A stretch of DNA of 64,000 nt, from assembly GCF_000009045.1 (NCBI RefSeq), contig NC_000964.3:2852001-2916000 (forward strand), read 5' to 3'. The translations under genes were made by a program, and so were the position numbers. The notes under the pieces were generated by a model. It did no database searches. It saw only the letters and a list, made by a program, of their open reading frames with translations, and was not told the origin of the DNA. Position 1 is the stretch's first letter, and each line of letters starts with the position of its first letter. Shown piece by piece: positions 60,972 to 63,148 of the stretch. The DNA is from Bacillus subtilis subsp. subtilis str. 168. GTDB lineage: Bacteria > Bacillota > Bacilli > Bacillales > Bacillaceae.

Positions 60972-61001
60972 AAAAAAAGCGATCCCTCAATCGGAATCGC
61001 T
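60972..61001 (-). terminator. terminator after trxA
   Basis: AGCGATTCC-gattga-GGGATCGC-T7. Confidence 0.85.
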
Positions 61002-61023
61002 CTGGCATGTAAGCAGCGGAAAA

Positions 61024-61338
61024 TTAAAGATGTTTGTTTACAAGCTCTTGAAGCGCTTCTTTTGGTTTGAAGCCGACTGAAGTTTCAACTACTTCGCCGT
61101 CTTTTAACACAAGAAGAGTCGGGATGCTCATAACGCCGTATTTTCCGGCAGTTTCTTGGTTTTCGTCTACATCGATTTTTACGATTTTCAGTTTGTCTCC
61201 CATTTCTTGATCCAATTCTTCAAGAACAGGTGCAATCATTTTACAAGGTCCGCACCAAGGAGCCCAGAAGTCTGCCAGTACGACGCCTTCGCTTGTTTCA
61301 GCTGAGAAAGATTGATCAGTTGCTTTTACGATAGCCAT
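61024..61338 (-). CDS. trxA: thioredoxin
   Basis: WCGPCK, MSIPTL; start MAIVKA behind GGAGG. Confidence 0.99.
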
Positions 61339-61372: not shown

Positions 61373-61411
61373 AGTATAGCATCTCCCATTCGTTCACGCT
61401 ATTTTAATGCT
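61373..61411 (-). promoter_or_regulatory. sigmaA (Spx-activated type) promoter of trxA
   Basis: TAGCGT-N17-TATACT with AGCA element just upstream of -35. Confidence 0.7.
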
Positions 61412-61482
61412 TACAAATTATTTTTTCCTGATCACAGCCGGTTTACTCATTTTTATATGGTTGAATGGGATATGCTCTTTTT

Positions 61483-61554
61483 TTAAAACACAAATCTGAT
61501 AATGGCCCCGATCACTACAATTGCCCCAATAATCATTAAAATGGTACGAAGCAT
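61483..61554 (-). CDS. candidate 23-aa hydrophobic small protein MLRTILMIIGAIVVIGAIIRFVF
   Basis: SD GAAGAGGAGATGTGATC, ATG start, TAA stop, single TM-length hydrophobic core flanked by Arg; lies just downstream of a sigmaB promoter. Confidence 0.62.
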   Translation of the reverse strand: MLRTILMIIGAIVVIGAIIRFVF

Positions 61555-61591
61555 AAGATCACATCTCCTCTTCACTGTCATGTACTTTACC

Positions 61592-61617
61592 ATGCCCTGC
61601 CGGAGCTGTTTTAAAAC
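61592..61617 (-). promoter_or_regulatory. sigmaB promoter upstream of the small ORF and trxA
   Basis: GTTTTA-N14-GGGCAT. Confidence 0.78.
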
Positions 61618-61620
61618 CTG

Positions 61621-61654
61621 AAAAAGAGCGCCGGCATGAAGCTCCGGCGCTCTT
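61621..61654 (-). terminator. terminator after xsa
   Basis: AAGAGCGCCGG-agcttcatg-CCGGCGCTC-TTTTT. Confidence 0.85.
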
Positions 61655-61660
61655 GCGCGA

Positions 61661-63148
61661 TTAAGAATCAGCACGCAGCGTAAGTAAGACGACTGACATT
61701 GGCGGGAGTTTTACTTTCAGTTTGTTTTTGCTGAGCGTGTATTGTCTGAAGGATTCCGGTTTGACATGATGAGGATCGTCAAACGTGTTATGCGCATTCA
61801 TTTTTTCTGCCGTAAGAATGACTCCGGAATGGTCCGCTGCCTTGTGTAGGCCCCTCAGCTCGATTTCCGCCTCTGCTTTGTTTTGGTGATCGATGTTGCA
61901 AATTGTGATATTGATATCGCCTTCAGCTTGTTTCGACGCTGAAATGCTGATTTGCGGAAGCGTTTCACCGTTCCATTCATAGTCGGCAGACATTGTCTCT
62001 GTGGCTAAAAGAGAAGCGTCCTGGTGCACCTTAAACATATTGAATACATGGTACGTCGGTGTCAAAAGCATCCGCTCTCCCTCAGTCAAAATCATCGCTT
62101 GAAGAACATTTACTGTTTGGGCGATGTTGGCCATTTGCACCCGGCGGCAATGCTGATGGAAAATGTGGAAATGAGAAGCCGCCACCAGTGCATCACGAAT
62201 GGTGTTTTGCTGATATAAGAAACCGGGATTCGTGCCTGGCTCGGGATCAAACCACGTGCCCCATTCATCAATAATCAGCCCGACCCGCTGCTCCGGATCG
62301 TACCGGTCCATAATCGTGCCGTGTTTTTGAATCAATTCATCGATGTATTTGGCTTTTTTCATCGTAATAAACCATTCATCTTCCGTGAATTCTGTGGCTG
62401 ATCCTTTGCCCTTCCAGAAATCCCCCGGAATCGTGTAATAATGAAGACTCAACCCGTCCATCAGGCCAGCGGCTTTTTTCATAAGCACGTCCGTCCAATT
62501 AAAATCATCCACATTTGCGCCGCCTGCAATTTTATAAATGTCATTCCCGCTGTAATTGCGGACATAAGTCTGAAAACGCCGGTACAGATCTGCGTAGTAT
62601 TCGGGATGCATGTTGCCGCCGCAGCCCCAGTTTTCATTGCCCACGCCGAAATATTTCAGCTTCCAAGGCTCTTCTCTTCCATTTTGCTTTCTCCAGTCTG
62701 ACATCGGCGTGCCTTCTTCAAATGTCATATACTCAATCCACTCCGACATTTCCTGAACGGTTCCGCTTCCGACATTGCCGCAAATATATGGCTCGCATTC
62801 AAGCAGCTCGCAAAGCATCATAAATTCATGCGTTCCGAATTCATTTGATTCAATTGTACCGCCCCAGTGAGTGTTCAGCATTGTCTTACGGTCACCGACA
62901 CCGTTTGCCCAATGGTATTCGTCCGCAAAACACCCGCCCGGCCACCTAAGGACAGGAATGTGCAGCTGTTTGAGCGCCTCCAGCACGTCCTTTCGTATCC
63001 CGTTGATATTGGGGATGTCTGAGTCCGTTCCGACCCAGATCCCCTCATAAATCCCTCTTCCTAAATGCTCAGCAAAATGACCGTATATATTTTTGTTAAT
63101 GGTTCCTTTTGCGATATCTGTTTGAATCACTGCTTGATGTTCAGACAT
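61661..63148 (-). CDS. xsa: alpha-L-arabinofuranosidase, GH51 (Xsa/Abf2)
   Basis: [22 protein letters not shown] acid/base, DEWG nucleophile. Confidence 0.96.

Follow-up and report, generated by a model that had tools for sequence, protein, structure and literature searches.

The essential thioredoxin of Bacillus subtilis is a textbook case of gene regulation, yet the transcript that carries trxA under stress appears to hold a second, unannotated gene. The question raised by this locus is whether the short open reading frame (ORF) located between a distal, sigma-B-type promoter and trxA encodes a protein and, if so, whether it travels on the same message as thioredoxin. The ORF was analysed within a window of 64,000 nucleotides of the strain 168 chromosome, where it lies on the minus strand in the etfA - xsa - trxA - uvrC stretch. 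Adding 2,852,000 to a window position gives the strain 168 position, since the ORF recorded at genome 2913554-2913483 by Friedman et al. 2017 (PMC5521070) matches window 61554-61483. We put at roughly three in four the probability that this ORF is a genuine gene for a 23-residue, single-helix hydrophobic microprotein, and that it forms the first cistron of the sigma-B-initiated trxA mRNA. The features of the locus are, in order of transcription:

63169-61661, minus strand: xsa, a GH51 arabinofuranosidase-like gene
61621-61654, minus strand: intrinsic terminator of xsa, with an 11-bp stem (61654-61644 / 61634-61624) and a U tract (UUUUU) at 61625-61621
61592-61617, minus strand: sigma-B-type promoter, with -35 GTTTTA (61617-61612), a 14-nt spacer and -10 GGGCAT (61597-61592)
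61583, minus strand: transcription start (A), 9 nt past the -10, at the published 5' end of the RNA ncr2299
61565-61573, minus strand: Shine-Dalgarno site GAAGAGGAG, 10 nt ahead of the small-gene ATG
61483-61554, minus strand: small gene of 23 codons plus TAA (ATG at 61554, TAA at 61485-61483), predicted product MLRTILMIIGAIVVIGAIIRFVF
61424-61448, minus strand: degenerate second sigma-B-like element, GAGTAA-N13-AGGAAA, from alignment with the licheniformis group
61373-61411, minus strand: proximal Spx/sigma-A promoter of trxA, with AGCA at 61411-61408, AGCG at 61400-61397 and a TG-extended -10, TATACT, at 61378-61373
61024-61338, minus strand: trxA, encoding thioredoxin (104 aa; Pfam PF00085 on orthologues)
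60976-61003, minus strand: trxA terminator, with no terminator-like site between it and the sigma-B start

The distal promoter and its transcript

Scharf et al. reportedly assigned trxA a distal sigma-B and a proximal sigma-A promoter in 1998. The original prediction had likewise named a distal sigma-B and a proximal sigma-A/Spx promoter, and the promoters found here match that description, are conserved across species and agree with the two-promoter architecture in the literature (PMC2801614; PMC7824861). The names of the AGCA and AGCG elements in the proximal promoter follow PMC2801614, and this promoter is nearly invariant in all genomes compared.

The stem of the xsa terminator has a predicted free energy of -20.7 kcal/mol (RNAfold); its 9-nt loop hid it from a consensus terminator scan. 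Three bases (CAG) then separate the xsa U tract from GTTTTA, so that the element GTTTTA-N14-GGGCAT begins 3 nt past the U tract, at 61617-61592, exactly as had been predicted. It matches the sigma-B consensus GTTTAA/GGGTAT at 10 of 12 positions, with a spacing inside the accepted range of 12-15 nt. Both strands of the 64-kb window (128 kb) were scanned for at least five of six matches per hexamer, an obligatory GGG and a spacer of 12-15 nt. This returned six matches at five independent sites, only one of which falls within the xsa-trxA interval, and the match of the distal promoter exceeds chance. Furthermore, GGGCAT and the 14-nt spacing are invariant across 10 aligned species and the GTTT of the -35 is retained, the hexamers and their spacing being conserved from B. 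subtilis through B. pumilus.

The original prediction had called for the 5' end of the message to be mapped, and a published end exists. Irnov et al. 2010 (PMC2965217) listed an sRNA candidate, ncr2299, at genome 2913485-2913583, between trxA and xsa and on the same strand, using a TEX-enriched (primary-transcript) 454 cDNA library of strain 168 cells that had been grown for ~20 h in glucose minimal medium and had entered glucose-starved stationary phase. The 5' end of ncr2299 (genome 2913583, window 61583) is an A located 9 nt past GGGCAT, in line with initiation at the distal promoter. Its length of 99 nt is the span of a 454 read from that 5' end, not a mapped 3' end. In addition, a 2021 study (PMC7824861) relied on a PCR fragment of this region as the standard template in its in-vitro assays of SigB-dependent transcription. 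From window 61830 the fragment extends to 61427 in its short form or to 61380 in its long form, and both forms end ahead of the -10 of the proximal promoter; the short one (61830-61427) ends before any of the proximal Spx/sigma-A elements. The distal element is the sole sigma-B-like site that the fragment contains. Sigma-B dependence has indirect support from the promoter sequence together with the use of this fragment as a SigB standard.

From the small-gene stop to the ATG of trxA (61338) there are 144 nt, a gap that contains the Spx/sigma-A promoter. No terminator-like site was found between the small ORF and trxA in B. subtilis, B. atrophaeus or B. zhangzhouensis, which agrees with the claim that none intervenes over the ~145 nt to trxA, and the only terminator on that strand is the one that follows trxA (61003-60976). 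The 262-nt leader RNA folds no better than shuffled sequence (z = +0.91). Because there is no terminator and the leader before trxA is unstructured, the long sigma-B transcript is predicted to be a two-gene mRNA of ~610 nt that ends at the trxA terminator. We infer read-through into trxA from the promoter, from its use as a SigB standard and from the absent terminator. The Spx/sigma-A transcript, which would start downstream of the small gene, is predicted to carry trxA alone. Earlier work (PMC2801614; PMC7824861), by contrast, describes the sigma-B transcript as trxA with a long leader and not as a two-gene mRNA.

A conserved reading frame of 23 codons

The strong Shine-Dalgarno site, the ATG, the 22 further codons and the TAA that had been described for the ORF are all present at 61573-61483. 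In 14 species the duplex between the small-gene Shine-Dalgarno site and the 3' end of 16S rRNA ranges from -9.5 to -16.5 kcal/mol, compared with ~-10 kcal/mol for trxA, and the small-gene site is equal or stronger in all 14 genomes; the published Shine-Dalgarno score for the ORF is -12.32 (PMC5521070). The encoded peptide, MLRTILMIIGAIVVIGAIIRFVF, has 23 residues and a GRAVY of 2.36. Its Arg3 and Arg20 border a 16-residue apolar core containing the tandem hexapeptide IGAIVV / IGAIIR (window 61501-61536, minus strand), which bears out the earlier description of a core of transmembrane length with an internal IGAI-VV-IGAI repeat and an Arg at both ends. One transmembrane helix has been predicted for it (PMC5521070), after which only the tail RFVF follows. 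A core of 16 residues is short for spanning a bilayer, and this counts against reading it as a membrane helix. The conserved pairs Gly10/Ala11 and Gly16/Ala17 may form a packing face by which the helix associates with itself or with a partner. At the DNA level the two halves of the repeat, ATTGGGGCAATT and ATCGGGGCCATT, lie 18 nt apart and are identical at 10 of 12 positions, a hint that the small gene could have grown by internal duplication.

The conservation and substitution analysis across Bacillus that the original prediction had proposed was then carried out on the regions upstream of trxA from 80 species genomes, 14 further loci reached via UvrC orthologues and 8 metagenome contigs found by a degenerate DNA pattern. 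This gave 22 copies for the coding comparison, 14 from genomes and 8 from metagenomes. These fall into 15 nucleotide alleles and only 3 peptides; the variant peptides carry I19V and, in one strain, G10V. At least 36 substitutions are needed to connect the alleles, 4 at first, 1 at second and 31 at third codon positions. Three of the four at first positions are silent (Leu/Arg), as are at least 34 of the at least 36 overall, and two alter an amino acid. Variable sites number 4, 1 and 18 by codon position, with an excess at third positions (binomial P = 1.3e-5). Between the subtilis and pumilus groups pS is 0.82-0.93, that is, saturated, and yet the peptides are identical or one residue apart (I19V). 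Such a substitution pattern, combined with saturated silent sites, is what one expects of a gene that is translated and whose product is constrained in its amino-acid sequence. The comparison indicates that the 72-nt ORF is a genuine gene and that purifying selection on its peptide is strong.

The sequence around the ORF behaves differently. Outside it, most intergenic sequence cannot be aligned between the subtilis and pumilus groups; as the flanks diverge or are deleted, what is retained is GTTT, GGGCAT and the N14 between them, a purine-rich Shine-Dalgarno site, the ATG, the TAA and the Spx/sigma-A promoter. Between the small gene and trxA lie 144 nt in B. subtilis, against ~96 nt in the pumilus group, and this spacer cannot be matched up between the two. 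Loss of the Shine-Dalgarno site in relatives had been named as grounds for rejecting a coding role; the site is present in every copy found, as are GGGCAT, the 14-nt spacer and most of the -35. Rare database alleles include a 6-nt deletion in one B. subtilis lineage that removes ATG-CTT, and with it the start codon, a frameshift following Ile15, and three alleles extended to 29-31 aa by stop loss or a late frameshift; these would be either real variants or sequencing errors.

Gene callers have met this ORF many times. Versions of 63, 45, 43, 36 and 32 aa stand as 'hypothetical protein' in more than 200 assemblies, the 63-aa form (from GTG 61674; window 61483-61674, minus strand) in more than 200 from B. 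subtilis, the 45-aa form in B. altitudinis and the 43-aa form in B. vallismortis. The N-terminal extensions differ among species, and the 23-codon form alone is conserved. We rejected the 63-aa reading, which begins upstream of the mapped 5' end and crosses the promoter as well as the stop codon and terminator of xsa. The 32-aa reading (from ATG 61581) was also set aside: its start lies 2 nt from the RNA 5' end and has no Shine-Dalgarno site ahead of it; in B. mexicanus this start falls out of frame, and in B. atrophaeus a stop comes after it. The exact 23-aa sequence was not found in a collection of 15 billion proteins that does include the 26-aa SpoVM; no annotation in that collection therefore has the correct gene. 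A HMMER scan of 1.84 billion representative proteins returned three matches, all of them over-extended calls of the same locus. In Pfam and NCBIfam nothing scored above cut-off, the best being SA1362_fam (12.8-14.5 bits; cut-off 42) and DUF5775 (12.5 bits; cut-off 28).

The suggestion that this is an overlooked small protein stands in part. The gene is unnamed and is annotated only as over-extended hypotheticals, but its transcript was published as ncr2299, and in 2017 the exact ORF was scored as coding with a probability of 0.99 (PMC5521070, supplement 5, 'ORF prediction details'), with q 0.04, a PAML lnL of 56.45 and no BLAST hits. Thus Irnov et al. 2010 (PMC2965217) and Friedman et al. 2017 (PMC5521070) had the same locus and the same ORF in hand, genome 2913554-2913483. 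Neither links it to a sigma-B promoter or to trxA, traces its distribution and losses, or reports a test of it. No ribosome-profiling or mass-spectrometry record of the peptide was found in the supplements of PMC5521070, and full-text literature searches, among them one for B. subtilis small-protein ribosome-profiling studies, found no paper in which the gene is named or tested.

The small gene is present in B. subtilis, B. inaquosorum, B. spizizenii, B. rugosus, B. tequilensis, B. mexicanus, B. vallismortis and B. atrophaeus, and in B. pumilus, B. safensis, B. altitudinis and B. zhangzhouensis of the pumilus group. All 22 copies are single-copy and sit between a sigma-B-type promoter and trxA; none was found elsewhere or in viral contigs. 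It is absent from the licheniformis group, from B. gobiensis and B. changyiensis and from all 72 more distant Bacillaceae loci (L009-L080), and a scan of 80 Bacillaceae trxA loci for an analogous hydrophobic small ORF with a Shine-Dalgarno site recovered only this family. In B. velezensis-type genomes (L005 and L006, about 2880-2960) the small gene is missing along with its start site and Shine-Dalgarno site. The gap covers ~130 aligned columns, from just past the -10 to ~30 nt beyond the stop codon, whereas the distal promoter region, with its -10 changed to GGTTAT, and the downstream leader are retained. It amounts to a clean natural deletion that spared the leader. Its distribution marks the small gene as accessory: it either arose or persisted as the subtilis and pumilus groups radiated, and at least two losses followed. 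It is dispensable in whole lineages, which, like the start-codon deletion or frameshift in a few B. subtilis assemblies, counts against the explanation that we favour.

Possible roles and alternative readings

If the ORF is a microprotein gene at the head of the trxA message, general or energy stress would lead sigma-B polymerase to initiate at A61583, giving an mRNA of ~610 nt that bears the small gene with its own strong Shine-Dalgarno site and, 144 nt later, trxA with its own site. The proximal Spx/sigma-A start, lying downstream of the small gene, would yield trxA only. The peptide would enter the membrane after translation, since the whole chain fits inside the ribosome exit tunnel and insertion would have to follow release. 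There it would most likely act by helix-helix contacts, either with itself or with a membrane protein. We infer translation of the peptide in vivo, its membrane location and any partner; its action on such a partner is speculation on our part.

Small stress-induced membrane proteins of E. coli and Bacillus are often missed by annotation, are made from stress promoters and are frequently co-transcribed with a larger gene; Hemm et al. reportedly gave examples in 2010. The membrane proteins and modulators AcrZ, MgtS, KdpF and CydX are likewise shorter than 50 aa, with one hydrophobic helix. The small gene shares with such proteins a length below 50 aa, one hydrophobic helix, a stress promoter, a history of missed annotation and a larger partner cistron. 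The likeness is one of kind and not of homologous family: it has no sequence relationship to them. With 23 aa and a 16-residue core it is among the shortest of this kind, and to be linked to the gene of a cytoplasmic thioredoxin is unusual. We rate it as uncharacterised and as belonging, on present analysis, to this kind. A more specific proposal is that the microprotein works in the membrane specifically under stress and is produced in a fixed ratio to thioredoxin. It might tune, for example, the TrxA-fed membrane thiol-disulfide relay (CcdA to ResA/StoA), a transporter or a respiratory complex; the sigma-B message of trxA would then be a two-part redox and membrane module absent from the Spx form. 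We consider this improbable as it stands.

Hydrophobic toxins of only 18-30 aa exist (Ibs, ShoB), and the peptide might instead resemble type I toxins, being induced by stress and active at the membrane. Such an orphan or domesticated toxin would slow growth or depolarise the membrane while sigma-B is active, and would have no dedicated partner protein. It is indeed small, extremely hydrophobic and single-helical, and its 'type I toxin prediction' score of 0.6 lies between those of BsrG (0.4) and the BsrH locus (0.8) in the same table (PMC5521070). The B. subtilis toxins BsrG, BsrE, BsrH and TxpA (PMC2965217) also resemble the small gene in being short, with one predicted transmembrane helix and a good ribosome-binding site, and in having first been seen as 'sRNA'. 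They differ from it, however, in being located in prophages, in being overlapped by an antisense RNA and in ending with a charged tail; no such feature was found for the small gene. There is no antisense promoter-like site in the window, antisense matches in B. atrophaeus do not exceed chance and lack conservation, and Irnov et al. (PMC2965217) list a sense transcript only. The tail after the helix is only RFVF, and the gene is single-copy, always syntenic with trxA and never in viral contigs. Type I toxin families, moreover, vary widely, whereas this peptide is near-invariant. Taken together, these features make a toxin unlikely.

That the peptide has no function, and that the act of translating the ORF tunes trxA expression or stability in cis on the sigma-B mRNA, would accord with a position inside the trxA 5' leader on the long transcript, Bacillus leader ORFs being common. 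Such a simple upstream ORF does not need the selection on amino-acid sequence that is seen here at every position, and the spacer to trxA is variable (144 versus ~96 nt) and unalignable. Neither a terminator/antiterminator nor a stable fold was found, trxA has its own strong Shine-Dalgarno site, and the velezensis group has dropped the ORF yet kept the promoter and leader. We therefore hold a cis-acting role to be quite unlikely. Finally, a non-coding RNA that acts by base pairing, with the ORF incidental, recalls the first report of ncr2299 as a 99-nt sRNA candidate (PMC2965217) but is very hard to sustain, given that the 4/1/31 pattern by codon position is the opposite of RNA-level constraint, that the leader and small-gene RNA has no Rfam match and no stable fold, and that 99 nt matches the 454 read length where no terminator is present.

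The reading that thus fares best is the structural one with which the original prediction began, namely a sigma-B-type promoter, a peptide gene and trxA, with the Spx promoter between the last two; it is supported by the conserved promoter, the mapped 5' end, the SigB fragment, the selection on the peptide and the absent terminator. If confirmed, it would bring a conserved microprotein into the sigma-B regulon, a set of genes with physiological roles that remain poorly understood, and hundreds of over-extended 'hypothetical protein' annotations would be corrected. It would also provide a clean natural comparison of small-gene presence and absence, because the B. velezensis and B. licheniformis lineages that are without the gene keep stress control of trxA. 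The practical gain would be modest, as the ORF had been flagged computationally already in 2017.

History of the promoters and of xsa

Genomes without the small gene have a sigma-B-like element, GTGTAA-N13-GGGAAA, directly upstream of the Spx element, and in the licheniformis group (L083, about 1945-1975) it is the only sigma-B-like element before trxA. The GAGTAA-N13-AGGAAA element of B. subtilis (61448-61424) aligns with it and is probably a decayed remnant. The GTGTAA-type element may represent an ancestral stress promoter in proximal position, one that decayed after the distal promoter had come into use.

The upstream neighbour has had a history of its own. B. mexicanus FSQ1 (L004, 2550-2700) has lost xsa, and etfA is followed there by a remnant of the xsa 3' end and its terminator; the promoter and the small gene persist in this genome, so the latter is tied to trxA and not to xsa. 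The pumilus group (L007, L008 and L090-L094) has no terminator between the xsa stop and the sigma-B-type promoter, which are ~20 nt apart, and read-through from xsa could reach the small gene and trxA in these species. In one B. pumilus genome (L091, 325-1801) xsa is split into ORFs of 213 and 270 aa and is probably a pseudogene; the same genome has the only Gly10-to-Val change seen in the peptide.
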